Below, in pieces: positions 38,950 to 64,000 of a DNA stretch of 64,000 nucleotides (position 1 is the first letter of the stretch; the number at the start of each line of letters is the position of its first letter). Below the pieces are notes generated by a model. It did not search any database, was not told the origin of the DNA, and saw only the letters and a list, made by a program, of their open reading frames with translations. Origin of the DNA: Takakia lepidozioides (taxonomy: Eukaryota > Plantae > Bryophyta); assembly GCA_030704615.1 (NCBI GenBank), contig CM060733.1:12648001-12712000 (forward strand), in the 5' to 3' direction. A program made the position numbers and the translations under genes.

Positions 38950-40277
38950 GTGTGTGTTTCTGTGCGCTCTTTCGCCTTTTACTTACTAGCAACCAATCCT
39001 ACTCTCTAGCTGCGATCCAAACGTATGAAGCTTGAACACTACTCGCAATTCTATCTCTATCTATTTTCCCTCGGCACAAATTTCCACGTTATCCCTGTTC
39101 AATTCCACCTCTCTTCTCTTCAACCCTAAAATCAACCCGATCCAGATCCTATGAAACCTAAACACTGAGTTGAGCCCTGCCTTTCTCTGTGTCTCTTGAT
39201 CCAAACCTCAACAAACACTAGGACAATTCCGCATCAATCTCAAGCGTCTCACGCAGGCACGCATACACAAAAGAAGACGATCAGAGCACAATTTAACCCT
39301 AATGGCCTAGAGCTTTGTTGGCCCCGCCTTCCTAGTAAGTAGGGCCTTTACCACATGAGCAGCAGTCCGGCACGGGAACAGATAGTTGAGAAGCAAAGGT
39401 GTCCACCTTCCTAACGGAGGACAATAACCCTTGGGGGTAAATAGGCTTCCTGGGGAGGCGTCAAATATTATTAATATTGGTATGAGAAGCAAAAATGAAT
39501 GACTCATATGAGCTCCACGGCGGGAAGGAGTAGATCGCGACAAAGAAGTTCCCTAAGAGCATGCCCAGCAGGCGCTCTATTTGGGGTGCTATCATCAAAA
39601 TAGCGCGGCCGCCGAGATCGCGCGTCCCTAACAGCACAATCTGGCGCTTCAAAATGGTGAGCCTAGCCAAGTTTGGTCCGGCAAGTGATAAATGAGGCCC
39701 GGGAGTTCAATGCTCCCTCTGAGGGCCTGCCTGCGTGGCCCCACCCCCGCCCTGCAGCCCGCGGTCGCCGCGCCTGCCGCCCCCCCAACACCTCCACCCC
39801 CGCCCCCGCGCCGGGTCCATCCCTAGCCATAACACTGCCATACATTCTCACCATTGTCATTATTGTATTGCACGCAACCCTCATGCATGCCCCATGAATG
39901 CAGGAAATACAACCATCGCATGATGACTTTTCGATCATACACGCACATGACTACTCAAACATACATATGACTACTCAAACATACATATTCGAAATTTGAA
40001 CGAGTCCTAGAGTACAGACACACTATATTGGAGTCCGTGAACATTCAAATTTGAAATTTTGAAACAGCATCCAATGTGCCTCCAAAACGGATGGACGTCA
40101 TTTAGTGAATGACAGCTGATTGACCACCTGTCCCCACTATCTTCGGCCGTCATTCTGTGTCTCCGAACTTCCGGACCTCCTTCATCGCTTGCCCTAGTGT
40201 GATCATCAGTGTGTGACGAATTTGAAACACGGTGCCTCTTGCTGTCTCAGTGTGGTTTCACCTGCTTCCCAACAGAC

Positions 40278-43200
40278 ATGTTTGCGAATGAGAGAACTGA
40301 AGAGTTTCTCCCTCCTGTTGTGCCCCATTTGATCTCCATGCTTCGAAACCAGGTGCAATCTCCGGCGCTTGGTGCTTTCAATCACACAACGTTACATTGG
40401 CGTCACCAATGGCATGGAATCCCCGATGGAAGCGACAACGCCTACATTCCATGGGGGCGTGTGATTGATTTCATAATTGGGGAGTCTTCTCGTCTTGATG
40501 GACCTTGCACTTTCCAGAAACATCGTCAAAGAGGGCGCTGTGCACAGGGATCCCTCCAAGCTCCACGCACCAACAGCGCCCTCAGTATTACAAGGTACGA
40601 CGTTAATGAAAACAGTTAAAGTATTGTTTTACTTTAAATAGTTTCCAGTGATGCTGACGACCTTGGTGAAGGAGTTCAAGCTGAACGCAGAAAAGTACAC
40701 CTACCATCATGCTTATCACCTTCTTCATGCAATGCGATCGTTCATCCATAGATGCATGTACGACCCTTTCAGAAACCTCCATCTCACAAGCTGCGATTCT
40801 CCAACAAATAGTCATTGTGTGTTGTCATTTAACCGAATGTGCAGTTTCCATGTAGTCACAGTCATGTGTACTGCCCACGTCTATTTTAGGCCACTTTTTC
40901 GTCATAAACTCCATTCATGCATGGTTGTATGATCCTCTCATAAATTTTCATCTGGGAACATGGGGTACTCATGGAAGCATACCTGACTGTACATTGTAAT
41001 TTGCTGCCAACACTGTCTCATTTACCTGTTCGGGTGTAAAAGTGTTGTTAAGGGTTGAAGGATTATGTCTTCGTCTTTGCTTTCAAGTTTGTATACAATA
41101 GTACTATCCCAATTGCATGCCCCTCTATTGTCCACAACTCTTTTAGGCGCTCCCCCCTTTTATTCCATTAATGCAAGGTTCTTTCTGTTGTAGGTACCAC
41201 TGCTCATCCGGGCCAGAGGACAAGACTTCTGTTGTCTTGCAGGTTACATCCGCCATGGCAGCGAAGAAGTGGAAACCCAAACCTCCAAAGAAGAAGGGTA
41301 GAAAGGCAAGAGTTGTTGCAACCGTTAAGGAGCAAAAACCAAAAGTACTAAGGACGTCCAAAACGAAATCTAGTGAAGGCATCAAGTGGGGATGTGTATG
41401 CCGATTTGCAGTCAAGCAATGCTATTTGGACCCAAAAATCGCAGAGGTTGTGTACTACGAGAAGAGGCACGTCAATCGTGCTGGAGACATATCCCATGGG
41501 CCAGCACATGATTGTGGTCGGGTTGCATTGGCCCCCCCACATCAGAGAAGAAATGAAAGCCTGGGTACTGCATAACTTGCGCCTTGGACTAAGCATCAAC
41601 AAAATCATTGCAAAGCACATGCAGCGGGTGAAGGAAACTATGGAAGTTGGATTGGAGGCAGATCGTGACACTTTCCTGCTCTCCTAGGACATCTGCAACA
41701 TTGCCAACAAGTGTGATGAGGAAACGTTTAAAAAGCACCCAAATGATGCTCGCAGTGTGTGAATGTGGGTGGAGGCCAACCATGACAGTGTTTTCTACTA
41801 CCACGAAGAGTCCAATCACCCTGCCTGGTTCGAATAGCCGTAAACTGGACCTTCTTTTTGTATTGGGCATACAGACAGAATGGCAGAAAAAACAAATGAT
41901 GCATCACGGACATTCTCGAATAGTGGCATGCGATGCAACATTCGGGACAAACGAGAAGAAGGTTGGTTTGGCCAAGATCACCATCTGGCTGCGGACAGAG
42001 CTCAACTATTTTCTGCATGGTCACAATTTTTCGGTCCCCTCGCTCCTCTGTATTCCTGATCAATTCTGTTGCATGCTTGTTCTTGCAGTATCCTTTGTAC
42101 ACCATGATGGTGTTTGATGAGTGGCTGAATGGTATTCTAGTCGCGTACATAATCACGGCAAGGTACAAAGCCCATGGATCTGCGATCTTGGATGCATGCA
42201 CTAAACCAGCAAATGCAAGCCGTCAAGGCCGAATGGCGCCCTAACGCCTTCATTGTCGACGACGCAAATGCGGAAATCGTTGCTATCAGGTAGCTCCGCC
42301 TCCTACACTGCTGATCCTTTCACATATCCAACGTGCACACATGTGTTACAGTCATTCAATCTCACAACAAACAGCTCTGTGTGGGGGGGTTGTGCAATTT
42401 TCCTGTGCTTGTGGCATGTTCGGCGAGCCTGGCAAAAAGAATGTGGTCTCCAAGATCAGAGATCCAGAAGTACGTGCCGCAGTGTTGCAAGATCTTGCAA
42501 AGATCATGTACGACAGAAAAGGCACATCTGGGGATGCAGGTGAGGCTTGGGCAGTATACCAAATCATCTCTTTAATGTAGGAGAAGTACCCCAACGAGAC
42601 TATATTCTGCGACTACATGGACACCGAGTGGCTTCCGAAAACAAAAATGTGGATGAAAGGTTCTAAAAACATACCACATGCCTCTCAAGATACTAATGTT
42701 GCCATACAAGCTTATCATGGCAACCTCAAAGCGCAATTGAAGTGCACCAAAAGTGTTTTCACTAGCAGAAAGGTAGATTGGCTCATCTCCGAACTCACTG
42801 GTGATGTCCTCGTCCATTACTGGTACATGTTTCATGCGAAAGCGTATGGATTTGTCAGAGACAAGCGGTTGGAGGGGTTTGTTTGCAGTTCCATATTGCT
42901 TGCCAAGCACATTCCAGATGACAACGTCCAACTGCCGCAGACCCCTGGTGGCCCTACACTTGTTCAATGCGCACGGGAATTGGGTAGGACATTCACAATT
43001 CACAAACCTGAATCAAACTGGGCTTGCTAGGATTGCTCTTGGGCCCAGAAGGGGAATATGTGCACACACCAAGTGAAGGTTCTGCAAATAATCCACCCTC
43101 ATCTCGAGGATGGCCTCATCGCAAAGTTCTGTGGAACTCTGATGGGCACATCTAAAGGTGGCCTTCACAATTTGGTGAGAGGTTCTCAATCCCCGACTTG

Positions 43201-43577
43201 TATCCGTTCATCTTTGCAAACTCCTCCACATCAGAGGTCCCCTTCTTTATCTCAGTAGAGTCCATTGCAGAACGTGCAGGCCCAGATTTCCACAGAAATG
43301 GCAAACCATTCTGCAACTGACAGAGTCTAGTGACTACCTGCAGCAACATCTCTTTGCCTTGATAAGAGCTGCAAAAGGAAAGATTCTTGAGTTGACTGCC
43401 ATGATGGAGGAGGGTGTTCAGTACCCTCGTGAGGAACCAGTTATGACTGTTGTCGATGATGGCAAAGGGAAGTCCCTCGTCCGGTTCAAAGACTTTTTGG
43501 AGAGAAATGGACACAGCAGGAAACGCCCACCCTTGCCCACTCGAACCACACCAAAGAAGAGATTGTACAGTGACTGA
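40278..43577 (+). pseudogene. Decayed MULE-type DDE transposase with SWIM zinc finger (At1g60560/At4g13970-like family)
   Basis: Multi-exon gene with motifs AYIPWGRVIDFIIGE, YHCSSGPED, GCVCRFAVK...HVNRAG, FVLGIQTEWQ, DATFG (41932), IVDD (42252), CLWHVRRAW (42406), IQAYH (42704), RKVDWLI and SWIM DCSWAQKGNMCTH (~43031). It contains several stops and frameshifts. Confidence 0.88.
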
Positions 43578-44749
43578 AGGTGTGTACGTGTTGCAGAAAA
43601 CAGTGTCACAGCAATGTCAATCAGTCCTTTCTGATCCTCAGCATGTCACTCACATTGTGTTCATCCATCTTCCAGGGTCAATGAGCCTATGTATCACTTA
43701 CTATGTTGTTCACACGATGGCACCGTCACGAGTCCGCTGAAGGCGTGTGCTTGCATCCCAAGCTCCTCCACTGGCTTTTCCAGGGAATGGGCTTCGCACA
43801 TACGGTACAATATTGTTTTGAGGAGCTTCTGCCTCTGCAGTCCCTTCATATGCTTGCCTCATTCGCTTAATTGCTGGTGTTCTCTTATTAACGAATTTTT
43901 CATGTACCCTTCAACTGACAGCACCTTGTATTCAGGTAGCATCAAACGTGCTGAAACATGACAATCCAAGAAGTTTCAGCTTTACAACATGGTAGTATGT
44001 ATAGTTTCCTCCTCTTCTTTCTTGGCGACACGGATTTCCATTCGGACTCATTGTATTCACCCACCATCGAACGTGCTGAAATATGACAATCCAATAAGTT
44101 GCAACTTCACAACAGGGTAGTATGTATGGTCACTAGAAGCATTCGTGTCTTTTACGAATCGACTGCATGTCCAAAACCACTGAGGGAACAACTTTGAGAT
44201 GTTTGTTACTACTGTACAGTCGTAACGGATAAATTCGCACTTCTAATGGCGGATAGAAGTTGCATCAATGACTCCGCAGTCGGCGCAATATTCGCGGCGA
44301 TTTAATTCAATTATGTAAATTGTTTTTTTTTTTTAAACAACAATTACAAGTGGTTTTAAGCACTAGAGAACGACTCTTAACAACTAGGCATTCATTGCAC
44401 ACCCTATTCAAAAATGGAATTTTTATAAGTGCTCCACATGGATCATGACGTGGCATATTTTAATGTATTTTAGGGCTTGTGTGGCTTGTAGAGATTGTTC
44501 TAATCGTCGGATGTAAAGTGATCTAAGGGTGGAAGAGTAACTTTGTCCTTTGCCTGAATTTGTCTAAGTGTTGGGAGAGGGATGGAGGCTTGAGAGAGAG
44601 ACGAGCAAGTGATGCGAGAAGGATGAAGACCAAATCGAGGCCCATGTCCTGTTGTTGCAAGCGTTTATGGCGTCAAGGGCGCATTATGTGCAAATGTGGG
44701 CTCTTGGCTCCCCTTTGTACCATGATTTGGTATTCTTCCTGATGATCAC

Positions 44750-47700
44750 AAGGTTCTTGGGGGAATCAGCTTGGTCTTAGCAGCCCATATTTTAATCTCT
44801 GCCCGCTCAGCTGCACCGTGGTGGTTCTTACGAACCAATCCCACATTACCTGACTACAGATACAAGCAACACGCACAAGAGGTCTTCTTGGGTTCATGGT
44901 CAGTCTAATCCGCAATGGGTCATGACACAAGGTAGAGGACAATGTGGTGAGGGCACCTTCTTCTTCAGCTATTTCAGCCTGTTTTGCCGAGATGTAGTGT
45001 CGTGGAGTGCGATGCTTGCAGGGTATGCATAGCAGGGACGTGGGATGGAGGCTTTGGAGACCTATGAAGTTGCGAAGGGAGAGTTTGATAACATGGCTGA
45101 ACGAGATGTTGTCTCAAGGAACACGCTGAATCTTGCAAGATATGGCCAGCATGTGTGCGGGATGAGGGCATTGGAGACATATGAGCAAATGTTGCGAGAA
45201 GGGGTGCAGCCTAACCGGGTCATGTTCATTTGTGTTTGCAATGCATGTGCAAACTTGGCAGCCCTGGAGACTTGGTAAAGGGCAAAGAGGTCCATTGTGA
45301 CATCGTCAAAGCTGGAACTGTACCAGATGTAACAATACCTCGTCAACATGTATGCCAAACGTGGGAGCATTCCCTTGTGGACAAGGAGTGTTCAACAATA
45401 TGGCTGAGCGAAATGTGGTGTGGTGGAACGTGATGATCGCAAGACATGCACAACATGGGCGGGGATTGCGGGTTTTGGAGACCTATGAGCAAATGATGTG
45501 GGTCTAGGGGGTGAAGCCCGAGCACATTATGTTTGTTTGTGTTTGTAGTGCATGTGCGAGCCTGTTGGAGAAGGGCAAAGAGGTCCATGGTTGCATCGTC
45601 AAAGCTGGAATTGAGGTAGATGTCATTCTGAACATGAATACCCTTCTAGATAGGGAGTGTTCAACAATATGGCTGAGCAAAATGTGGTGTCGTGGAAAGT
45701 GATGATCGCAGGACATGCACAACAGGGGCGGGGATTGCAGGTTTTGGAGATCTATGAGCAGTTGATGTGGGAGGGGGTGAAGTCTGACCACATTATGTTC
45801 AGAGAGTTCAAATGCCTCTCCACCATGACCTTGCTTAGCTAACCATGCCTTGCTGATGTTGTTGTCTTGCACTTGAGCTATTTTTGGACACTGGCTGGAA
45901 CATCCACAAGGCGGCTTTGCTCGAGAGAGAAATCAGCTTGAATGCAGGGGCAGATTTTGAGATCACAATCACCACTCAGAACGTTGTTCTTTGCACCGGC
46001 ATGGCATGTCAGCATGCATATCAGCCCAAACTCATTATTCCGTGAGCCTTCCACTGCCAGAGTGTGCCCATTCAAGCCAAATCTTCGAAACGCAGGGATG
46101 GAACGGGGTTTTGAAACCAGCATTGCCCAACTGGATACCCAATTCAGCTCCGCATCTTGGTCCATTAATCTGCTGCACATTGTGAAGTTTTCTGCCCGTT
46201 CACCGCAAGTTGAAGAAGGAGTATTCTTAAAACACGGGTACTCATAATCTGAAAATGGCTCTAGCTTATGTTGCTTGAGTGCGAATATGAGTGTGGTTGG
46301 CTTGGCAGCTTTACATCTGTCCATCCCACTCGATATGATGAGCAGGTTCAGTTTGACTTCTCTCACACAAAAGACGCTGCCAAGATGGGGTTTGTTGCCC
46401 TAGATGACTTCCCGTCGTTGTTCTGGGCTGCAACATACAATTAATCTGGCCCATGGCGAGGGGCCTTGCCTTCCACCAATCATCTGTAAGTCCTGTGAAA
46501 CTGTTTTTGTGGCAGTTTGTAAGCAGTGGGCAGCGATGGTGGGCTGTTGTAGGATTTGATGAACTCAATGTCGTGTACTGACAGCAACCCCTCATCTCTT
46601 ATGCAAGCATTCAACAAGCCAGGTTGACTGCAGAGCATATTCAGCCCCCCACGTTTCTAGTTGCCTAATGTTCTTCATCTCTTGGGCAGAGCATTTTCCA
46701 GGGTCTCCATCTGTGATGACACACTATCTTCTCATGTGGTGCAGCTTCTGGTCTTGCTCTTGTTTGCACCACCCCAATGAAGGGCAGTTCCCACCTGCTT
46801 GATTCTCTCCATATGGTTGTCTTGGCAGGGTTTCCCACAACCGCCTTTCCTTTTTAGACTGCCAGTCATCAGCCTCGTTCTCCAATGCTTCACTTTCTTC
46901 CCAAGTGAAGTGCTCTCCTCTTTTATGCTTCAACGTCCCTGCAGGTGTTTTTTCCTTCATCTCCCGTGGTGCTTTCGAATGAATGAGCACTGATTTGCAT
47001 CTGTTGGCAACACTTACGGTGTCCCTTTCCTTGCATGCCACTGCAGGCCCGTCATTGACTTTCTTGGCAGGGAAGTCTCCTCCTTCTCCCTCATTTTCTG
47101 GCTCTGTTGGTGCCCCACTCACCATGCTATCAGGGCTGCATTTATTTCGTGGTGTTGCGCCAGCCAAGGACGATCTTTCACTAGTCCGATTGTTGGCAAC
47201 AGCTGATTGGAGTCTTCTTGGCAGAGTCTCCCACGAGCTCCCATCAATTTCAGGCATCAGGTTTTCTACCCTGCCCTTCCACTTTTCATAAGCGAGGTGC
47301 CTGTCTTCCTCCCTTTCACTCTTCAGCCTCTCAGGCAGATTTTTCTTCATGCGATTGCTGCTCCCATACTTCCAGTCCTTGTTTAATTTTCTCCAGCCAT
47401 CACCCTCAGATTTGACAAGGTATTGCTGCCCTTCCTTGTGTCTTTCCTCACTCCCAGCTGCTGGTTTTATCCCAGATTCACCTCTCATCCTTGCCTGGGG
47501 TTTTGCTTGCCAAACAGCCCTTGTGTGGGGAACTTCAATGAAAGGCAACATCTCATTCTCAGCTCCTGTCTTTGTACCTCTTTGCAGCAGTCCAGCCTCG
47601 GATGCCTCACTTTCTGATTGCTAGGTTGCATTCTTCGACCGCCAACCTTTGACAAGAAAGTGTGCTCCATCTTCCTCATCTTCTACTGGTTCCCTTGATG

Positions 47701-49750
47701 CTTCACCTCGTATGTCTTCCTCCTCATGTTTTAGCAGCAACTCCCATGCTTGAATTGCTACTTTTCCTCGTAGTTGATTTTGTGCTTTCCTTTTTCTCAG
47801 TAGCTTAATCAACTGTTTTGTCTTGGCAGCTCCCTTGCCATGAGTGCCTTGTCTCACTGCATCTCCCTTGGCTGCCCACCATCCGTGGAGTCTTTCTTGC
47901 ACCATTTTGACCCTCGTTGGCATGCACTTTGCTGTGATGCCCCACATGTATTTGCTGCTCCCTTTAATCATCAACATAGTGCTCTAGAGCCAGTTCCTCA
48001 TTGTTGACTAGTTGACCTTCTCAGCCCTTGGACCCCATTTTCCCTTCTCCCATGTTGCCTCGTCTTTCTGCTTCATCATTTGCTTTACTTGCACGATGTT
48101 GCTTCTTCCCTACAGCTCATCATGTGTTGTGGCTCTTTCCCATGTTGCACTCACTCCCATCACACGTTGTGCAGTTGATAAGACTGAGATGAATTGATGC
48201 AGGATAGGGGGAGGGCTTGCTGGTGTATGTTGTCCGATAGGCCCCACGCACAAAGTCAAAGCTGGAAGTCAGCCTTGCAAGGACCCAAGTGAGATAAGTC
48301 TGGTGGGGGTAGCATCTTGGGGGATGGCAGTTAGGGCAATGTGTATCTAGGGCAATATATGTCATAGTAGCGGGTGATGTGCTGCCAATTTTGAGGATAG
48401 AGACAGCCTGTAAGCTGTAGATTTGTATCAGTGGTTTCTTCTGACACATATTGCTCCCAGTTTGCCACAACCAGTTTTGTTTGCATTTGTAGTGCATGTG
48501 CGAGCCTGCTGGGGAAGGGCAAAGAGGTCCATGGTTGCATCGTCAAAGCTGGAATTGTGGCAGATGTCATTCTGAACAATACCCTTGTGGACAGGGAGTG
48601 TTCAACAATATGGTTGAGCGAAGGATAGAGTGTAATGACTACTAATGAAGGTACCTTCTTCAATTTCACCTTGTTGTCCCCTGTTATCAGAATCGCCCCT
48701 AATTATTCATGTCTGAATTCTGCAAGTTAGCTGGTTGAGTGAAGTTTGATAGTTTGGAGTGACTTTGACATGATTCTGCCAATGTGACAACAGGAAAGTA
48801 TCAGAAATAGGTAACACAGACCAGGAGAAGTTGTGGAATGAATACTTTTCTGACCCCAGTCAATGGTGGGACAATCGAGGCAAGAAGGTGAATGTTTGTT
48901 GGATTATAGAGAGTAGCAGATGCAATTGAGCGTAGGAACTAGTGTGATAAGTTGAGTTGGGTGCTTCCTAGAACAAGTCTAGGCTGTCATCGTCAACTGC
49001 TAGCAACAAGGCAAGGTTGTATGCTTGATTCGTGCGAGGCATGGATAGCTGAAGGAGCAAGGATAGAGTGTGGGTGCAGATTCACCCAAGAGGGCCGGAC
49101 TTCAAGCTCCAGATTAACTATGAAGCTACAAGAAACCTGCATGGATAGATGGTCAACTGGCAGCATCGGCACAATTGATAAAATCAGACATTGTTAATGA
49201 AGGCATCTTCTTCAGCACATTTCACCCTATTTTTCCCTCTTATCAGAATCGGCCCAAAATTTCCATGTTGAATTCTGCAAGTTAGCTGGTTGAGTGAATC
49301 TAGTTTGGAGTGACTTTGACATGATACTGCTATGTGACAACAGGAAAGTATCAAAAAACAAGTAACAGACATGAGGAGAAGCTGTGGAGTGAATACTTTT
49401 CTGCCCCCAGTCAATGATGGGACAACCGAGGCAAAAAGGTGAATGCCTGCTACATTTCAGAGAGTAGCAGACGCAATTGAGCATAGGAACTAGTGTGATA
49501 AGCTGAGTTGGATGTTTCCTAGAACAAATGTAGGTTGTCATTGTCAGCTACTAGCAGCAAGGCAAGGATGAATGCATGATTTGTGCAGGGGCATGGATAG
49601 CTGAAGGAGCAGGGATAGAGTGTGGTCCAGATTCATCCTAGAGGGCCAAATTTCAAGCACAAGATTTATCTATGATTCCCTGTGGATCAATAACTACAAG
49701 AAACCTCCATGGGTAGATGGTCTATTCTGTGGAACTCACTGAAGTCTTGC
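44750..49750 (+). pseudogene. Captured chimeric cassette A: OSB-type PDF motif, PLS-PPR repeats, two more PDF motifs
   Basis: A PDF-like NPTLPDYRYK lies near 44835. Frameshifted PPR P/L/S motifs occupy 45030-45800 and 48476-48620. Two intron-split PDF units lie at ~48825-49120 (EKLWNEYFSDPSQWWDNRGKK|IHPRGPDFK) and ~49375-49720. Confidence 0.78.
45801..48475 (-). mobile_element. Secondary insertion into the PPR tract; probable LINE-derived remnant
   Basis: It splits the PPR L motif HIMF|VCIC. Minus-strand RRFGLNGHTLAVEGSR resembles the LINE C-terminal RFRLGSHxLxIExGR motif. Charged low-complexity ORFs lie at 46724-47977. Confidence 0.45.
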
Positions 49751-52700: not shown

Positions 52701-54343
52701 TTCTCTTTCCGGGAGGGATATCGAATGGGGTCTGCCGCGTTTTATGTTTCTATGGAGAACGACCACGGAGCTTCTCGTGCCCACACTTTCGATGAGGTGG
52801 ACAAATGGAGTCCCCATTGGCAAAGGCGAAATGAGGAGTTCGAGAGATTGATTGCTACTGATCCTCTTTTCCAGCACTTGTCCGGAAAGATGTTTTACGT
52901 GTGGGACCGCAATCATCGCCTCCTGGCATGGATGGAGTACATAGCCCAAGCCCACCCCAACGACCTGGATTGGCATTTCGCCGTGGAGTGTGTTGTGCTC
53001 AAGGTTACGGGGCCCAAAGATCGCAGTCTTCTCAAAGCGGCAATGGCAAACATCAACTTGTAAGTTACAATGCTTCTTGCTTTGGAACTTTGAATTTAAA
53101 ACAGTCATTTCATTGCCAATTGTCATATTTGTTGCAAATTCTCATTTCTGTATTGTTTAATGGAAATGTGGCATTGCAGGGTGACTGAGAATGCCTTCAT
53201 TGCCACCAACTTGTCCCATATGAAGGATGTCGGGAAGCAGGGGGTGCAAGAGTTTGCCAATTCGCTCAGTGCCGACCTCCTGCGCAAGTCGGAGGCAAAG
53301 GCAGACAGAACCTGGTATAAGCTGAGCATGGACGCCATGGTGGACTACATATTTTGGGTAAAGCTCCTCACTGTTTTGTTGAGCTAATCTGTCTCTCCTC
53401 CCCCAATAGAAGAAAAATGCTGAGCATGATCTCTAATTTTATGTGCGCATTCTTGACAGACGAAAATTCAGCAGGATTTGGCACATGCGCGGAAGTTCTA
53501 CATGGAGTCAGAGGAGAAGAAACTAACCCTCCCGGCACTGGAATAGTATCTCAAAACTGCGGAGGCAAAGGCCCGCATCAAGTACAAGTCGCGGATCGTA
53601 AAGTACGTGGCCATAGCTGATCCCGCCCTTGGTGCCGATTTTCTGGTGGAGGTGGGGAAGCACTACTCCCGCGCTCTGAAGCCCACGATGACATTGGAGA
53701 AGCTGCATCGTCTAGCCACATCATGTGTGGATGCAACAGAAAAGGTTATACATTCTTAACCAAATTGTCATGGCAGCAATTCGTTTTTGTGGTGTTTGGC
53801 ACTTACTAATATGCTGGGTGGTTGGACATACCCGGTGGCTCCAAATCTGGAATGGTTCCCAAAGTACAAGGGACATGTGGAGCTTCCCCAAACCCGACAA
53901 ACTGTCTGACCCCACATTCGACATGTGGATGAACCGCATGACATGGTGGTTTCCCACGCTTCATTTGGCGCTTCTACGCTTGTATCCGATGGATTTATTG
54001 TATTTTTTGAGGAAAGCGGTCTGATGGAGAATCTCCACAGGTGACGACGAATGCGCAAGAGCAGCTTGACACACAAGCACATCAGTTCAAGCTAGAGATT
54101 TCTGGTGAAGCAGAGAGCCTACGCGACTATGTGACGAGGTACTTTCTGCTCTACAAAACCGACCTATTCTTTCGAGAGATACCCCATGCCCGCCGGAGCC
54201 ACGAGTTCACCGACCAGCCGAACGCGGACAAAGCGGCAATGCGCCTTCTGTACAGATACATACGCTGTGCCTTTCTTTTTAGTCCCAACATTTCCAGGAT
54301 GTAAGAGGCCTTATGTGGTGCATGAAAATTAGTTGTGGTCCTA

Positions 54344-55330
54344 GGAAAAATGGCGCCGAATTTCCGAATTCGGGCCCTGGGGGATGGCTGTCCAGGGGGT
54401 GGCTGGCACTCAGTCCGGAAATTCGGCGTCATTTTTCCAGTTGCAGGCCTAGTCAGATCTGGGACTTACCCATTCTCGGCCCCAACCTGGGAAAATGGCG
54501 CCGAATTTCCAGTTGAGGGCCACGAAAATGGCTAAGTCCCTGGGGTGGCTGGCACCGAATCCGGAAATTCGGCGCCATTTTTCCAGATCCGGGCAAAGAC
54601 AGCTCTGGGACTTAGCCATTTTCGGGCCCAACCTGGGAAAATGGCGCCGAATATCCAGTGCAGGGCCCCAAAAATGGCTAAGTCCCTACAGTGGCAGGCA
54701 CCGAAACCGGAAATTCGGCGCCATTTTTCCAGTTCCAGGCCCAGTCAGTTCTAGGACTTAGCCATTTTCGGGCCCAAAATTGGAAAATGGCGCCGAATAT
54801 CCAGTGCAGGGCCCCGAAAATGGCTAAGTCCCTACAGTGGCAGGCACCGAAACCGGAAATTCGGCGCCATTTTTCCAGTTCCGGGCCCAGTCAGTTGTGG
54901 GACTTGGCCATTTTCGGGCCCAACCAGGGAAAATGGCGCCGAATTTCCAGTGCACGGCCCCGAAAATGGCTAAGTCCCTTTAGAGGCAGGCACCTCAACT
55001 GGAAATTTGGCGCCATTTTTCCAGTTCCGGGCCCAGTGAGTTCTGGGACTTAGGCATTTTCGGCCCCAACCTGGGAAAATGGCGCCGGTTTTCCAGTGCA
55101 GGGCCCCGAAAATGGCTAAGTCCCTAGTGTGGCAGGCACCGAAACCGGAAATTCGGCGCCATTTTTCCAGTTCCGGGCCCAGTCAGTTGTGCGACTTAGC
55201 CATTTTCGGCCCCAATTTGGGAAAATGGCACCAAATTTCCAGTTGACGGCCCCGAAAATGGCCAAGTCCCTAGGGTGGCTAGCACCGAAACTAGAAATTC
55301 GACGCCATTTTTCCAGTTCCGGGCCTAGTC
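54344..55330. repeat. Intronic tandem array of ~6.8 copies of a 146-bp internally inverted unit
   Basis: TGGCGCC anchors at 54351, 54496, 54642, 54788, 54934, 55080 and 55226 (last one TGGCACC) give a period of 145-146 bp. The array lies within GT-AG intron 54301-55393. Confidence 0.95.
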
Positions 55331-57254
55331 ATTTTCATTCCCTAAAATTTACCTCGTTCCCGGGACCTCATTTTGTGTGTTTCTTGAATTCAGGTACTGC
55401 AAGTTCTCACTTTTGGAGAAAGGACATCTGTCCTTTGAGCCGCCATTCTTCCTCGCATGGAGGAACCCTGGGGCTGACTCCATGTACACTAACGTTATCG
55501 TGATGGAGTGGCATCTGGAACATTTGCGCGATTGCCCTTGGTATGTGGACCTTCCGCCCGGCTCGCTCGACCCATCCGAGTTTCAATTGAAGCTGGATGT
55601 TGAGGCTCGATGAAACCGGGCTCCGCTGCCTCCGCTGGGTCCAAAGGAGGCGAGAGCGCTTGCCCAGTCCAGGAAAGCGGCAGAGCGTGCTCAGGCAGGT
55701 ATTCAAGAGAAATTGAATGAGAAGAATAAAGGACAAAAGAAAAGGACACGGAAACAGGGGAGTACAGTAACCCCCAAAAAACAGAAAACCACCGGGGCAT
55801 CAGAGGAGGCGCAGGAGGGGCCCCAAGGGAGTGACTCCAACGACGACTTTGTGCAAGGTCCTGCGACTGCTGCTGCTGGTACCAAGTCACCGGTCGTCCG
55901 GGTTCCCAAGTCAGTTCAGACTGGGACTAGCTCTGCCAAGAAGTTGGCATTTGAGGGCGAGCCTACACGGCGGTATTCGGCGGTGACGTTTCCGAAGAGG
56001 CCAAAGCTAGAACCCCCAACCATCATCCAATGTGTCAATGAGAGCTTCCTTGACGCTCTGGCTGCCAGGGCGAAGAAGGTGGCACACAGCAAGTCTGTGG
56101 AGGAGCAGAAGGGGAAAGCCAAGAAGAGGGCTCCCAATACAGAGCCTAAAGACACCCCTGGTTTCGAATCCATGATGGAATTCTTCACGGCTGTGAGCAC
56201 GGATTGCAAGAGCACTCGGGGGGGGGGTTGAGGTGGAGAGAGCCTGCGATATGATTCCCTTGATATTCCAGATGGGGAGCTGCTGGAGGGCCTGGATGGT
56301 GTGCCCACCTAGGACAGGTTTACTGAGGATTACTGGAGAGCCAGGTTTGGGCTGGCGGGGATGCTCCTGGATGACGGTGGATGTATGGTGGTCCTTGCCA
56401 CAAGAGGGAAGACCACAGACAATGATGTGGCAAGGTGGACACCGAAAAGTGTCACCCCGGTCCTCCTCAAAAAATGGTTCTGCATCAATACGCAGAGGTT
56501 GCGAACAGAGGGCCAGAGTGTAAGTTATCAATCTATTGCATTCACTTCATATTGTGGTGTATTTGAACTAGACCCTGGAGTTGATCCCTCTTTTGTTGGA
56601 TGTCACTAGAAGAGAAACCGGCTTTTTCCATGGTTTTTTTCACACTTTTTGTTGTGGAATCAGCCACAGTCCACACCTGCCGTGGGTGTAAGGAACGACT
56701 AGTGCTTTCGGACACCCCGTGGACGGCCTGGCTCTCGGGTGGCCCTGTGGAAAAGTCCACGGGTGGCTTTTTCCACGGGAGGCTTTTTCCATGGGTGGGC
56801 TTTTTTCACGGGGTGCATGGTGACATGGCCGCTGACATGGCCGATGGCATAGCTGACATGGCAAAGTGTGAAAAAGGCCAGTGTGGCATGTTTCACGGCG
56901 GATTTCACACCTTGAACAAGCCACTATGCGACACATGTCATATTTCACACCTTCAACAAGTCACTATGCAACACGTGTTCGTTCCTGTGTGGTGGTACAC
57001 ATTAATTAATTATTATTTGCTTTCCAGTATTAAGTTTGAATATTAATGGATTTCATTTATTGTTATTATTATTATTATTATAGGAAAAATGGACAGTGGC
57101 CTGGATGAGAACATTATTAAATAACAAAATATTGAAATTATGTTTTTAGAAATTATATTTATTCGCTCAGATACCAAAACACACCCTTTGCAGGGAAGGA
57201 GAGTTTGTCTTAGTGTCTATGCTGAGTTGCGTCTCCTAATCTCTGTAATCTAAT

Positions 57255-60200
57255 AGACATTAACCTTTTTCCCTCGGTTGTCCCACCCTTCACTGCGGTC
57301 AGAAAAGCATTCATTCCACAGCTTCTCCTCATCTCTGTTACATGTTTCTGGATACTTTCATATTGTCACTTTGGCAGTATCATATCGAAATCACTCCAAA
57401 CTATGTATCATCTACCCATGCACGTTTCTTGTAGCTAAAAGGGAATCATAAGTAATCTGGAGCTTGAAATCTGGCCCTCTTGGATGACACTCTATCCCTG
57501 CTCCTTCAGCTATCCATGCCTCTGCACAAATCATGCATACATCCTTGCATTGTTGTTAGCAGCTGACAATGGCAGCTTAGATTTGTTCCAGCAAACACCC
57601 AACTCAACTTATCACACCAGTTCCTATTCTCAATTGCATCTACCACTCTGTAATCCAAAGGCATTTACCTTCCAAGACAGTTGTCCCAACATTGACTGGG
57701 GTCAGAAAAGTATTCATTCCACAGCTTCTCCTCTCTGTTACCTATTTCTGGATACTTTCCTATTGTCACTTTGGCAGTATCATGTCAAAGTCACTCCAAA
57801 CTATCAAAGGTTCACTCAACCACCTAACTTGCAGAGAATTCTTAAAACATGAAAATTTAGGGCGATGGGTTGAAGAAGGTGCCTTGATTAGCATTGCCTG
57901 ATTTTATCAATTGTGCCGCTACTGCTGCGGCTTCCAGTTGACCATCTACCCATGCAGGTTTCTTGGAGCTATTTTTCCACGGGGAATCACCCCTTCCCGC
58001 ATCATTGCTCATAGGTCTCCAAAGCCTCCATCCGCGCCCTTGCTATGCATATCCTGCAATCATCGCACTCCACGACACCACATCTCGTTCAGCCATACTG
58101 TCAAACACTTCCTTTGCATCCTCGATGCACCCACATTTGGCATACATGCAGTCCACCAGGGCAGTGTTCAGAATGACATTGGGTACAATTCCAGATTTGA
58201 CGATGTCACCATGGGCCTCTTTCCATTTTCCAGAGCTCCCAGGCTTGCACATGCATTACAAACAAATGTGATGTGGTTGGGCTTCACCCCTTCACGTAGC
58301 AGTTGCTCATAGGTCTCCAAAGCATTCCTACCACACCCATGTTAAATCCTGCCAACATTATATTCAACGTGATCAAAGTTCGTTGAGGCATTCTGTTGAA
58401 CACTCGATGTGCATTCATGATGCTCCTGCACTTAACATACATGTTCACAATGGGGTTGAGGAGAAAAACACTTGGTGTGAATCCACTTTGGATAATGTGA
58501 CTGAAATGCTCCTTGGTTTAAAGGTTGTAGAGCCTCTTTCAGTCTGCCTGCCTCACAAAGCATCTTCACATGCCCAGAAGAGCAAGAAGAGGCATTATGG
58601 ACTCCCTCTCTTGATCCTCTTTTAGAAGTTGTGGTATGGTTGAGGTGCCTAATTTAGATCAGGGCTGCCAGGCCTGCAATGCACACAAACATGATGTGGC
58701 CGGGCTGAACCCCTTCCCCCATCATTTGCTCATAGGTCTCCAAAGCCTCCATCCCACGTCCCTGTTGTGCATACCCTGCAAGCATCGCACTCCACGACAC
58801 CACATCTCGTTCAGCCATAGTGTTGAACACTCCCTTTGCATCCCCGATGCACCCACATTTTGCCTACATGTCCACTAGGGTATTGTTCAAAATGACATTT
58901 GGTACAATTCCAGCTCTGAAGGTGTCACCACGGACCTCCTTCCCCTTTTCCAGAGTTGCCAGGGCAGTGTCTCGAATGACATTAGGTACAATTCCAGCTT
59001 TGATGATATCCCCATGCACCTATTTGCCCTTCTCCAGGGCTGCCAGGCCTACAATGCATACAAACATGATGTGGCCGGGCTGAACCCCTTCCCCCATCAT
59101 TTGCTCATAGGTCTCCAAAGCCTCCATCCCACGTCCCTGCTATGCATACCCTGCAAGCATCGCACTCCACGACACCACATCTCGTTCAGCCATAGTGTTG
59201 AACACTCCCTTTGCATCCCCGATGCACCCACATTTTGCCTACATATCCACTAGGGTATTGTTCAAAATGACATTTGGTACAATTCCAGCTCTGAAGGTGT
59301 CACCATGGACCTCCTTCCCCTTTTCCAGAGCTGCTAGGACAGTGTTTCGAATGACATTAGGTACAATTCCAGCTTTGATGATATCCCCATGCACCTCTTT
59401 GCCCTTCTCCAGGGCTGCCAGGCTTGCAATGCATACAAACATGATGTGGCCGGGCTGGACCCCTTCCCCCTTCAGTTGCTCATAGGTCTCCAAAGCCTCC
59501 ATCCCACGTCCCTGCTGTGCATACCCTGTAAGCATCGCACTCCACGACACCACATCTCGTTTAACCATAGTGTTGAACACTCCCTTTGCATCCCCGATGC
59601 ACCCACATTTTGCATACATGTCCACTAGGGTATTGTTTAGAATGACATTTGGTACAATTCTAGCTCTGAAGATGTCACCACGGACCTCCTTCCCTTTTTC
59701 CAGAGCTGCCAGGGCAGTGTATGGAATGACATTAGGTACAATTCCAGCTTTGATGATATCCCCATGCACCTCTTTACCCTTCTCCAGGGCTGCCAGGCCT
59801 ACAATGCATACAAACATGATGTGGCTGGGCTGGACCCCTTCCCCCATCATTTGCTCATAGGTCTCCAAAGCCTCCATCCCACGTCCCTGCTGTGCATACC
59901 CTGTAAGCATCGCACTCCACGACACCACATCTCGTTCAGCCATAGTGTTGAACACTCCCTTTGCATCCCCGATGCACCCACATTTTGCCTACATATCCAC
60001 TAGGGTATTGTTCAAAATGACATTTGGTACAATTCCAGCTCTGAAGGTGTCACCATGGACCTCCTTCCCTTTTTCCAGAGCTGCCAGGGCAGTACAATTC
60101 CAGCTTTGATGATATCCCCATGCACCTCTTTGCCCTTCTCCAGGGCTGCCAGGCTTGCAATGCATACAAACATGATGTGGCCGGGCTGGACCCCTTCCCC

Positions 60201-61150
60201 CATCAGTTGCTCATAGTCTCCAAAGCCTCTATCCCATGTCCCTGCTTTGCATACCCTGCAAGCATCGCACTCCACGACACCACATTTCGTTCAGCCATAG
60301 TGTTGAACACTCCATTTGCATCCTCAATGCACCCACATTTTGCATACATGTCCACTAGGGTATTGTTCAAAATGACATTTGGTACAATTCCAGCTCTGAA
60401 GGTGTCACCATGGAACTGCCAGGGCAGTGTTTCGAATGACATTAGGTACAATTCCAGCTTTGATGATATCCCCATGCACCTCTTTGCCCTTCTCCAGGGC
60501 TGCCAGGCCTGCAATGCATACAAACATAATGTGGCCGGGCTGAACCCCTTCCCCCATCATTTGCTCATAGGTCTCCAAAGCCTCCATCCCACGTCCCTGC
60601 TGTGCATACCCTGCAAGCATCGCACTCCACGACACCACATCTCGTTCAGCCATAGTGTTGAACACTCCCTTTGCATCCCCGATGCACCCACATTTTGCAT
60701 ATATGTCCACTAGGGTATTGTTTAGAATGACATTTGGTACAATTCCAGCTCTGAAGATGTCACCACGGACCTCCTTCCCCTTTTCCAGAGCTGCCAGGGC
60801 AGTGTTTAGAATGACATTAGGTACAATTCCAGCTTTGATGATATCCCCATGCACCTCTTTGCCCTTCTCAAGGGTTGCCAGGCTTGCACAAGCATTGCAA
60901 TGCACACAAACATGATGTGAGAGGGCAAAACAGGTTGAAATAGGTCAAAGAAGAAGATGCCCTCACCACATTGTCCTTGAGGTTGTGTCATGACTTGACC
61001 GACCATCAACCCAAAATGACCTCTTGTGTGTGCTGCTTGTGTTTGTAGTCAGGTAATGTCGGATTGGTCTGTGAGATCGAACCACCACGGTGTAGTTGAG
61101 TAGGCAGAGATTGAAACACGGCCTGCTATGACCAAGCTAACTCTCCCAAG
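57255..61150 (-). pseudogene. Captured chimeric cassette B: PDF motif, expanded PLS-PPR array, two PDF motifs
   Basis: Segment 61150-60920 is homologous in reverse to 44755-44990 (NPTLPDYKHK). PPR motifs span 60910-57985. PDF remnants lie at ~57735-57670, HPRGPDFK at ~57485-57463 and EKLWNECFSDRSEGWDNRGKK at ~57327-57265. Confidence 0.8.
58660..60915 (-). repeat. Six near-identical ~375-bp tandem units, each encoding an S-P-L-partial L PPR block (125 aa)
   Basis: The AAACAT(G/A)ATG anchor occurs at 58687, 59062, 59437, 59812, 60168, 60522 and 60908 (periods 375, 375, 375, 356, 354, 386). Confidence 0.95.
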
Positions 61151-63934
61151 AATGGCAAGCTTGCAAGAATGTTGCGAGCTTCTCCTCGTCTCATCTCCTC
61201 CTCCTCTCCTCCTTCCTGCATCATTTGCTCAACGCCTCCATCCCACGCCCCTGCATATCCTGCGATCATCGCGTTCCATCCCTCGGCTACATGGTGTGGT
61301 GCAGGGAACCAAAAAAAAGGCCAAGTCCCAGCCCTCCTCTGTGTTCAAGATTACCCTAGTGGGCAACCTTATTAGCAACTTTTTGACTTTTTAATCTTTT
61401 GCACTTTGATTCATTCTAGGTCAGAGGCTAAAGTCCTGCTATCAGACTTGTCTAGAAAACCAAAACACCACGTAGACAAACATTTGATAATGGTAATAAG
61501 ATATATTACCATTGGGCTGGTTTGAACACTTGTTAGTAAATTTAGGTTAGGATTTTTAGGTTAGGATTTTTTCAAAATATTCTGGGTTTTTCTTTGATGT
61601 GTGAGATGACAAAGTCCAAGCATGTCACATAAACAAGGAGTTCAACGTAAGGATGATGCAAGTGATTTGTGGCAAAAAGTGTAAATCATGCCTATGCCTA
61701 TTTGTCCTAGTTGTGTCATAGGTTGCAACGGAATGGGGCCACCTTTGAATGCGATCCCCATGCTCATTTCACCAAGGGCATTATAGACTTCATAATGTAG
61801 AGATTGACAATGGGGTGTATTCTTCACTTGCTAGTACCATCGTGCAGATTTCTAAACATGAACATGAAGTTCATAATCATTTTCCAAGGGCATCATTCTC
61901 AAACTCCCCATACACCACAATCAGTGGAAATAATTGTATGTTCCCATTTCACACAGGTGTGTAACATGCCATGTAAACTAAGCCAACCCCTGCCACGGTC
62001 ATGGCTGTTTTCACACCGTTCTTGCCTGGGGTGTGGACCACATGTGAGACACCCCACAGTTAGGGCATATTTAGACCCACACCTTGGCTCAGTGTACAGA
62101 CCCGTGATAAAAGCCGTGGAATGTGCCAGGTGTGAGATGGCAGAGCCGTGGAAAAAGCCGGTTTCTCTTTTAGTGTGTGCAGACATTGGTGTTTGAGGCA
62201 TATTGTTTTGTGAAGAGAGGGTCTACGTTCAAATTCCGCAACGACGGTCGTCTTGTTGATGCCGCTGTGAACCCTGTTACCTACGATGTCCTCTACAACT
62301 ATGTGCCCCACTCCAGTATGCCGAAGGACACAAAGACAGGCAAACCGTGGCGGTACAGCCGGACCCGGAGCCTGCTTTCATCCAAACCCTCATGGAGACG
62401 TGCTCGGATGTCCAAGGGCAGATTCTTGACCTCACATGTGGCACGAGTAAGCCTTCACGTGCACATTTTGTCCCCTGGCCCGATTGCAATTGTATGCCGC
62501 ATGCTACTAACCGCCCGCTTTGTCCCTCAGGTGCTTCAATGTGGGCAGGGACGTTGTCCGATAGGCATGTCTTCGCCTTCGAGCCAGATACTGCCCTCCA
62601 CAACTCCGAACTTGCAAAGATTGAACGTCTGCCGAAAGAGGAAGAGGCATCCTTGGAGGATGAGGAAGAATCCGACAAGGAGCAGGGGGAGGTACAAGTT
62701 GGGATCGAGACCGAGGAGCCCCCGGTTTACGAGTGAGTGGTTGCATTGTAAGTTGCCTCCTGATTTTGTGAGGCACCTCCCTTCGCTCTCTTATTTCATT
62801 GAAAGACCTTTTTTTGCTTCTGCTGATATTGACATTTTTAAAGTGGATTTGTTCTTACTGCAGGATGTCAAGTACTGCAAGAGGGACGTCTACACCGCAG
62901 TTCATGGGCAGGAGGAACGTGCCTTTTTTTGCCAGGGGGGATTTCATGCCTAGTCCAGAAAGGGACTACATCCTTCCTACTTATGCTGCCCGGCTTGCTT
63001 CGGTGTCCATTAGGAGGTCTTCCAAACCTAGTTGTGTACAACAGATTTTAGACGAGGCAAGCCTCAAGAAAATGAAGATGAGGGAGGAGGCAACAGCTAT
63101 TAGAGCCCGTCAGGCTCGTAGATTTGTCTTGGATTCTGCTGAGGAAAGTGGGGGAGAAGAGGCAGAAGATTCCCAGGAGGTGAGGTGGACAGTCCCCCAA
63201 GGAGAGGACGGAATTTTTGAGAGGCATAGTGGAACTGATGCATCACAGAGCTCGGAGGATGGGGGGGATGAGGGGGATGAGGAGGAAGGCAGGGCAAGTT
63301 CCTCGGAGGGTGTATGAGAGTAGTGCCCATTCCGGCTATGACAGTTACGACACACTTGTATGATGTGGCTTGCCACAAAATTTGCAATAAAATGTTGCAT
63401 TTCATTTCTATGACGAGTCCACTGGTGCCAAATTCCAACTTGATATGACCCTATTTCCGTGCCTCCTAACCCTATTTCCGTGGACACACAATGGTCCGCT
63501 CATGTTTTTTTTTTTTTTTTTTTTTTTTTTCCCGCTCATGCTCATGCCGCTCATGAAATAGCAACCCCCGGCTGAAGCACCCTTGAGTACCCAAGGCACT
63601 CAAGGAGGCGGAGGCGCTCACTAGGTGGAGCCCCGCACACCGGGTTGCGGTGGGGTGGGTCCACGAGGGGTGGTGGTAGCTTAGTGGGTCTTAGTGGGTC
63701 TTAGTGGGGGTGGCATAGGACTCACCATGGGGCGGAGACCTTGTGGTGGGAGTCATGGGGAGTCTTGGGACTCATCACGGTCCAATGGGGCTGTGGTGGG
63801 TGGGCCAAGACTCACCGCGACTCATCACCGGGAATCGAGGGTCTTCGTGGTGGTTCGCCATAAAAATGGCATGGTTGTTTGTGAAACCCCCGCGGACAAT
63901 CACAGAAGTATATATAGGGAGTAGTAACCCCGAG

Positions 63935-63967
63935 AACGGTGCAAGCCCGTTGGTGACCAAAAACTAG
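63935..63967 (+). mobile_element. Helitron-like 3' terminus (hairpin, spacer, CTAG followed by T)
   Basis: Hairpin AACGG-TGCAAGC-CCGTT at 63935-63951, a 12-bp spacer, CTAG at 63964-63967, then T. No 5' TC terminus was identified, and the stem is short. Confidence 0.4.
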
Positions 63968-64000
63968 TGAGTAAGCGAGCGAGCCGGAAAGCGACCAAGG

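Follow-up and report, generated by a model that had tools for sequence, protein, structure and literature searches.

Whether three decayed genes that lie side by side in Takakia lepidozioides belong to one transposable element, or were brought together from separate ones, is the question raised by this locus. The window, meaning the whole 64,000-nucleotide stretch analyzed here, is a nest of elements: two CACTA-ended insertions, a decayed MULE/SWIM-like transposase, a PLATZ-like gene, and a spliced gene encoding a ParB-methyltransferase (ParB-MTase). A preliminary description had read the three genes as one ancestral mobile unit hidden by the insertions. Spliced or broken genes were searched in profile and homologue databases piece by piece, each piece separately, and Pfam was blank for the window pieces of all three genes.

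Results

The two insertions have CACTA...TAGTG ends with terminal inverted repeats (TIRs) of about 20 bp, subterminal DNA, and 3-bp TSDs. CACTA1 (44131-50556) has a 19-bp perfect TIR (26/30 matches) and the TSD GGT at 44128-44130 and 50557-50559; it contains PPR gene fragments, and no transposase was recognized inside it. CACTA2 (56604-62175), with the TSD TGT, carries tandem PPR fragments and lies in an intron of the ParB-MTase gene just ahead of the 3' splice site. Both insertions are confirmed, and their removal leaves 11,757 bp between 39557 and the ParB-MTase stop, in line with the compact module of about 11 to 12 kb originally described.

The left side of the locus opens with a candidate terminus on the + strand (39557-39580) that reads TAA and then GAGCATGCCCAGCAG and resembles a Harbinger terminus. 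No inverted partner was found for it in the window within 4 mismatches, and no Harbinger transposase or Myb protein genes were recognized in the window. A TAA-flanked Harbinger element spanning 39557-51118 was considered and dropped because its two ends are not inverted repeats. We note that the candidate terminus lies about 600 bp upstream of a host zf-UBP (BRAP2-like) gene and that host genes and a LINE are found upstream of 39557.

The frame at 40278-43577 on the + strand has many stops and frameshifts and probably encoded, as first described, a MULE-type transposase. Motifs seen by eye, Atlas features, and a fern MULE motif suggest a decayed MULE/SWIM-type DDE transposase gene of a non-GCM type, with Gln at the third catalytic Glu and a stop at the first SWIM Cys. 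At the second-Asp motif the frame matches a fern MULE (E, 0.009), and an Atlas feature search with MULE-type pieces gave clusters at 0.92 to 0.95, one of which bears SWIM (0.92). The individual broken pieces of the frame had no Pfam match. Word-based homologue searches with two MULE pieces and with the PLATZ half were also blank but mean little, because the method finds only proteins of similar length.

Either side of CACTA1, on the - strand, lie the halves of a PLATZ-like pseudogene. The 3' half (43700-44130) holds a CxxC-x10-SLGC motif at 43729-43845, which occurs once in the window versus 0.017 times per shuffle, and an internal 80-bp duplication (43926-44005 and 44051-44130; 85%). The 5' half (50560-51120), present in about 2 to 6 copies, holds a Cys/His core at about 50790-50990. 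The second zinc motif of PLATZ, C-x2-C-x10-11-C-x3-C, is matched except for one Cys changed to Arg, and the N-terminal motif (CHC4H2) is recognizable if loosely spaced. The gene pieces gave no PLATZ match by Pfam, Atlas, or homologue search, and an Atlas feature search with the PLATZ half gave no usable match. We call the gene PLATZ-like because its identity comes from motifs, with no PLATZ match from Pfam or Atlas. The Cys/His-rich gene stands as first described, but canonical spacing of motif 1 and a Pfam or Atlas match are absent. Its proposed 5' end at 51171 was not confirmed, because 51121-51171 falls within high-copy PPR-derived DNA. The possibility that the gene is a remnant of a GCM-type MULE was rejected, as it did not match the transposases of related loci L003 and L008.

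At 51117-51121, the low-copy PLATZ side meets the high-copy ParB side. Takakia lepidozioides contigs from runs X1 and X4 and the independent run X5 were compared over 50250-54300. In X1, contig depth was 276 to 428 for 50658-51065, whereas the ParB gene had a median of about 313,000 and single-locus contigs were at about 55 to 80. The ratio of the ParB gene to the PLATZ half was 730 in X1, 840 in X4, and 98 in X5, with the step at about 51120; in all three runs, summed contig depth is uncalibrated as copy number, and a filter drops some records. Two contigs of PLATZ paralogs (X4 #18 and X5 #25) end their match at 51120 and continue into unlike sequence. Among the matches listed, the only record to cross 51120 into the ParB side is the window locus itself (X4 #17, no differences). 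No TSD of 8 to 11 bp was found near the junction (51095-51135), the right side held no counterpart of the 39548-39556 flank, and 51117-51121 had no clean TSD partner.

Immediately beyond the junction, 51121-51406 on the + strand appears to be PPR-derived, an E/E+-like fragment recognized by eye and from loose ends, and 51277-51406 is 73 to 90% like pieces of both CACTAs. Short pieces of the segment were blank in Pfam. In other copies, 51121-51178 is joined to 51227-51447, and 51403-51639 is unbroken, so this leader of PPR origin is part of the ParB family. The ParB part diverges by about 5 to 7% from deep consensus-like contigs and the PLATZ half by about 3.5 to 4%, so for these two parts the similar decay first described holds only in a rough sense.

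The ParB gene was compared among 17 distinct related loci from liverwort, fern, and peat-metagenome sequence. It lies head-to-head with a different, GCM-type MULE in nine of them, a type that was sought upstream of 39557 in the window and was absent. PLATZ was beside the ParB-MTase gene in none of the 17, and a scrap of the window-type MULE occurred in one (metagenome locus L003, about 8 kb upstream of the ParB gene). Recurrence of the three genes together, on which the preliminary description had staked its proposal, was seen at none of the 17, which largely undercuts it. On the right side of the window, candidate CACTA-type ends at 63680-63969 (63686 and 63696, each followed by GGT, and 63969, followed by AGT) were not convincing; those at 63686 and 63696 match 51117 over 7 to 8 bp. 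A check of the one-unit model found no shared termini or TSD around all three genes inside the window, and a right end may lie beyond 64000.

The decayed ParB-MTase gene (51617-63317, + strand) is spliced by five GT-AG introns, and its protein comprises, in order, a low-complexity N terminus, a ParB/Srx domain, a helical middle, a beta-class amino-MTase fold, and an acidic tail. In the ParB/Srx domain (52619-53060, + strand), the GxxRxxA box begins RNHR in the window copy and is GNHRxxA in the homologue alignment and in other copies, where it is intact. The predicted model (pLDDT 88) indicates that the ParB/Srx fold is present: its best eight structural matches all belong to the ParB/Srx family, at modest Z scores of 3.6 to 4.9, and Atlas structural comparison gave TM scores of 0.46 to 0.56 to ParB_N/DndB. 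A PDB sequence search and Foldseek with the ParB model returned nothing significant, and no HTH was identified in the protein. Scans of viral and bacterial genomes turned up nothing closely related to the ParB domain, so the remark that such fusions are typical of phages is unsupported for this family.

In the MTase-fold domain, motif IV (about 56232-56300, + strand) precedes motif I in the SAM-binding half (62400-62620, + strand), as in beta-class PF01555. Window pieces match the homologue alignment at E values of 2e-6 and 3e-4, and the homologues match PF01555 at 1e-5 to 2e-3, which falls short of the curated cut-off. The divergent ParB-MTase gene of the earlier account is upheld. Motif IV is DIPDG in the window and DLPTG, DMPED, DMLED, DIPEN, NVPGN, DVPFG, or DFPIG in homologues; the catalytic (D/N/S)PP(Y/F/W) motif was found in neither, with DxPxG or NxPxN in place of DPPY. 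A structure model of the domain (pLDDT 40) was left out.

An intron of the gene contains 14 quasi-palindromic 21-bp sites (54345-55313). The sites are spaced exactly 73 bp apart and alternate in orientation to give a 146-bp repeat, and the site does not occur elsewhere in the window. A Riccia copy shows terminal inverted repeats as well as its own pair of palindrome arrays. Among related loci, arrays are clear in L008 and weaker in L009 and L050, L003 has a 145-bp tandem, and none were seen in most of the decayed Sphagnum-type loci.

Discussion

How the three genes came to be neighbors is probably explained by a join at 51120/51121 between a low-copy segment and a decayed copy of a very abundant ParB-MTase DNA transposon. 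The low-copy segment would consist of the MULE/SWIM transposase and a captured, decayed PLATZ-like gene. Contig depth, uncalibrated as it is, suggests about a thousand or more copies of the ParB-MTase element, whose own transposase and left end appear to be missing here. An insertion and a subsequent deletion probably produced the join, and the two PPR-carrying CACTA elements likely inserted after it.

Alternatively, the ParB-MTase gene may lie within an intact nonautonomous CACTA element (51117-63696, TSD GGT) whose insertion site was immediately upstream of the PLATZ gene. This reading is compatible with the preferred one and specifies the ends only. CACTAAG sits at the depth step with GGT before it, an 8-bp inverted match at 63696 is followed by GGT, and the leader is common to the PPR-CACTAs. 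Pairs of 7 to 8 bp with a TSD occur by chance, however (nine others among about 11,000), and CACT at 51117 looks native to the PLATZ side because the PLATZ paralogs match through 51120. Moreover, the real CACTAs of the window have long TIRs and subterminal DNA, whereas the end at 51117 enters a PPR reading frame directly. We consider such an element fairly unlikely.

Also unlikely is a rare chimera that moves as a unit, in which a MULE and PLATZ element captured the ParB-MTase module by Pack-MULE-like gap repair, leaving a handful of three-gene copies with a right end beyond 64000. The TSD-less junction fits capture, the partnerless left terminus and the few copies of the PLATZ side are consistent with it, and accessory genes of this sort in red algae reportedly pass from one transposon superfamily to another (10.1101/2025.02.11.637652). 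Yet the PLATZ paralogs that reach the junction depart from the window sequence there, and among the matches listed no second record crosses it. More doubtful still is a broader proposal, that non-seed land plants carry a mobile ParB/parS and amino-methyltransferase module swapped among transposon superfamilies, in thousands of copies in Takakia lepidozioides, which evades silencing by placing or imitating a mark other than 5mC on phased palindrome arrays and was captured here by a second MULE with PLATZ to form a rare mobile three-gene element. Finally, an ancestral Mutator with all three genes (transposase, PLATZ-like factor, and ParB-MTase) is highly improbable, for despite tight gene spacing, comparable decay, and the MULE scrap in L003, it conflicts with the roughly 700- to 800-fold depth step, the breaks in the paralogs, the lack of PLATZ and frequency of another MULE type at related loci, and the PPR-derived DNA that separates PLATZ from ParB.

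The interesting part of the locus is the ParB-MTase gene with its own palindromic site array. The gene is supported as transposon cargo, and our best functional guess is self-binding or self-marking. The protein would bind the 14 intronic sites as ParB binds parS and then spread or oligomerize on its own element, where the MTase-fold domain may mark or occupy the DNA. Marking or occupancy could confer resistance to host 5mC silencing or a license to transpose. Methyl transfer itself is the least certain step, somewhat short of an even chance, because motif IV is DxPxG or NxPxN and mostly lacks an aromatic residue. As a decayed junction, the window locus is a poor specimen and falls short of establishing a new three-gene element. 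Cargo of this kind with a family-specific palindrome array occurs in liverworts, a fern, and peat-moss-type metagenomes and is hugely amplified in Takakia lepidozioides. It is a directly testable candidate for another anti-silencing system of land plants, the second, and might also supply 6mA or 4mC on transposons. We found no land-plant paper on ParB-MTase transposon cargo, a type published for algal transposons (PMC12477816; 10.1101/2025.02.11.637652).

How the genes compare with known systems differs from gene to gene. The PLATZ-like gene resembles PLATZ transcription factors (PMC11768212) in its second zinc motif, save the one replaced Cys, and in a recognizable first motif, but it has deviant motif 1 spacings and no Pfam match, is decayed, occurs in several copies, and adjoins a transposase. 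As described, the Marchantia 4mC methyltransferases MpDN4MT1a/b (10.1101/2021.02.12.428880) also come from an early land plant and share the prokaryote-type amino-methyltransferase fold of the beta class; they have intact TSPPY, no mention of ParB, and a role as host sperm genes, whereas the window family has DxPxG and is transposon borne. Arabidopsis VANDAL elements are likewise Mutator type, and their accessory protein VANC is thought to target motifs of its own element, which form tandem repeats (PMC5735166). VANC has unrelated domain content and experimentally shown hypomethylation, while the window system is known from sequence alone; VANDAL/VANC is the only system for which binding and modification of its own sequence are stated to be experimentally shown (10.1101/2025.02.11.637652).

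Closer parallels come from algae. In red-algal Plavaka (EnSpm/CACTA) elements, a ParB accessory gene of the PAG2/PAG3 cassette adjoins tandem inverted-repeat arrays alongside PF01555 methylase cargo, and the cassette is mobile among Plavaka, Mutator, and Zisupton elements (10.1101/2025.02.11.637652). ParB domain, repeat arrays, and methylase cargo all recall the window, but in those elements one gene fuses ParB with a 2OG oxygenase and another fuses the methylase with SET, whereas here ParB and the MTase fold form one protein. The accessory gene of Ectocarpus Sola1-1_Ec32 does combine a ParB-like domain and a predicted N4C/N6A methyltransferase in one gene (PMC12477816) and, likened by description, is a single-gene fusion carried by a DNA transposon, with binding and modification of that element as its proposed role. 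Unlike that brown-algal gene, the window family resides in a land plant, is paired at related loci with MULE-type rather than Sola transposases, numbers perhaps a thousand copies or more, and carries its site array in the gene's own intron.

Results

The locus holds one decayed representative of a genuine land-plant transposon cargo that is very abundant, a ParB-methyltransferase (ParB-MTase) gene with its intronic site array, and this copy abuts a rare segment that carries a MULE transposase and a PLATZ-like gene. A three-gene element, as proposed in the preliminary description, is not supported.

The ParB-MTase gene (51617-63317) has five GT-AG introns and, like the other broken genes, was searched piece by piece. 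Its exon at 52668-53060 had 375 relatives (best, 46 to 48%), with named ones from Riccia sorocarpa and Adiantum nelumboides among them. A model predicted from an alignment of these relatives (pLDDT 88) had ParB/Srx structures as its top eight structural matches, at modest Z, and matched ParB_N/DndB clusters by structure in Atlas, a protein cluster database. The GxxRxxA box has its Gly in other copies and a private Arg in the window copy, which also bears a frameshift at 52685, a 12-bp deletion at 53220, and a stop at 53545, all absent from other copies. The C-terminal pieces align to homologues that themselves match N6_N4_Mtase. Motif IV reads DIPDG in the window and DLPTG, DMPED, DIPEN, NVPGN, DVPFG, or DFPIG in relatives; the family retains one proline and the acidic or amide residue at the first position, and the aromatic residue is mostly absent. 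One intron holds 14 quasi-palindromic sites with an exact spacing of 73 bp and alternating orientation, and the site was found nowhere else in the window. None of the RNA runs searched contains the window stretch, which says nothing about silence. Between the window copy and other copies, C-G transversions were in excess over 50250-54300 (53 in sequencing run X1, compared with 31, 27, and 22 in the three remaining classes of transversion), alike in all four runs.

Whether the three genes travel together was addressed with the species' own contigs, placed on 50250-54300 at 80% likeness with depths summed. Summed depth is not copy number, some records were filtered, and the values serve only as a contrast: X1 gave 276 to 428 over the 5' half of the PLATZ-like gene (50560-51120, minus strand), a median of ~313,000 over the ParB gene, and ~55 to 80 for single-locus contigs. 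Read likewise as a contrast, the ParB/PLATZ ratios of 730 (X1), 840 (X4, same sample as X1), and 98 (X5, an independent run) indicate a few copies of the PLATZ half versus roughly a thousand or more of the ParB gene. Depth steps at ~51120, where two paralog contigs, matching from 50885 and 50939, continue into unlike sequence. One contig crosses to 51130 with zero differences from the window and is probably the window locus itself. From 51121 on, the DNA is PPR-derived (E/E+-like as judged by eye and by loose-end letters), is 73 to 90% like pieces of both CACTA insertions at 51277-51406, and as a leader (51121-51406) is joined to the start of the ParB gene in other copies. The step, the divergence of the paralogs, and the leader argue against a single mobile unit. 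A rare three-gene chimera is unlikely; at most a handful of such copies could exist, because any whose divergence equaled that of the ParB part (5 to 8%) would have matched.

Two CACTA insertions with target site duplications (TSDs) are present as first described, except that the right-hand TSDs had been counted within the insertions. CACTA1 (44131-50556) begins and ends as CACTA...TAGTG, with a perfect terminal inverted repeat of 19 bp and TSD GGT; CACTA2 (56604-62175) has TSD TGT. With both removed, the distance between 39557 and the final stop is 11,757 bp. Both contain PPR fragments, and no transposase was recognized in either. Amplified PPR gene fragments fill them, with a 375-bp tandem unit in CACTA2, and the two are mutually related in inverted orientation; they are Pack-CACTA-like. 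Both proven TSDs (44128-44130 and 56601-56603) end in GT, as do the candidate-end flanks at 51114-51116 and 63970-63972, and these CACTAs possibly prefer NGT targets.

That the ParB gene lies inside a further CACTA (51117-63696, TSD GGT) is possible but weak. Comparable end pairs arise by chance, and the similarity to PLATZ paralogs extends through 51120, so that the CACT appears to belong to the PLATZ side originally. For these two reasons we favor a deletion or capture junction at 51120; the ends of the ParB element were not located. The left candidate end at 39557 is preceded by TAA, ~600 bp upstream of a host zf-UBP gene, and has no partner within the window; it is reminiscent of Harbinger ends.

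The plus-strand gene at 40278-43577, full of stops and frameshifts, looks like a transposase of MULE/SWIM type: it matched a SWIM-bearing Atlas cluster by feature search and, over a short stretch, a fern MULE, with the remaining support at motif level and Pfam blank for its pieces. The minus-strand Cys/His gene does show PLATZ-like motifs, the second with one Cys replaced and the first loosely spaced; its claimed start codon at 51171 falls in the foreign PPR-derived leader. PLATZ identity was named by no tool applied to the gene pieces (Pfam, Atlas, homologue search). The zinc motif searched for as the second motif follows PMC11768212; with an SLGC tail added to it, the pattern has 0.017 matches expected per shuffle.

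Elsewhere in the window, a run of 26 T between copies of a 9-bp direct repeat (63496-63540) has the appearance of a poly(A) tail inserted on its own. The host zf-UBP (BRAP2-like) gene has a LINE among its exons (30654-35180); this LINE contains a long endonuclease/reverse-transcriptase frame, and its 3' end is duplicated at ~10877-11890. A host-like frame of 525 codons (22441-24015, minus strand) weakly matches NXPE4_C (E 0.017).

Of 89 related loci retrieved across species, 17 distinct ones extended 6 kb or more beyond the ParB gene on its upstream side and were scored; most peat-metagenome loci were too decayed to reveal a partner or array. A different MULE transposase stood head-to-head with the ParB gene at 9 of the 17, with a SWIM domain confirmed in the fern copy, and a PLATZ-like match occurred at none. 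The window-type MULE appeared once, as a decayed scrap in a peat-metagenome locus (L003:1309-2359), truncated by the 3' end of the head-to-head MULE/ParB element. The three genes recurred together at none of these 17 loci, and an ancestral three-gene element is highly improbable. In the same peat locus, the interval from the transposase to the ParB gene holds a tandem repeat with a 145- to 146-bp unit (8417-8847), the period of the window's intronic array. A two-gene Riccia sorocarpa element (L008:2138-16022) has inverted ends, a nearly intact transposase, and a 1,207-amino-acid ParB-MTase flanked by two palindrome arrays, whose cores differ from each other and from the window's. It is a better specimen for experiments.

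Discussion

How the ParB-MTase protein might serve its element is suggested by ParB-parS biology and by the algal and VANDAL precedents. We think it somewhat probable that the protein would bind its own palindrome array and, once bound, would mark or shield the element against host silencing. Actual methyl transfer by the MTase-fold domain is more doubtful, as motif IV is mostly without its aromatic residue.

Within an incomplete coverage of the literature, we found neither a land-plant ParB-MTase transposon nor a PLATZ-bearing MULE. In red-algal Plavaka elements, ParB genes adjoin inverted-repeat arrays, and the cassette shifts among superfamilies, Mutator included (10.1101/2025.02.11.637652). 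An Ectocarpus Sola transposon encodes a ParB-like and N4C/N6A methyltransferase gene for which self-modification was proposed, and similar proteins occur in green and red algae (PMC12477816). The window gene resembles that of Ectocarpus both in its ParB-like and methyltransferase cargo and in the self-modification proposed for it.
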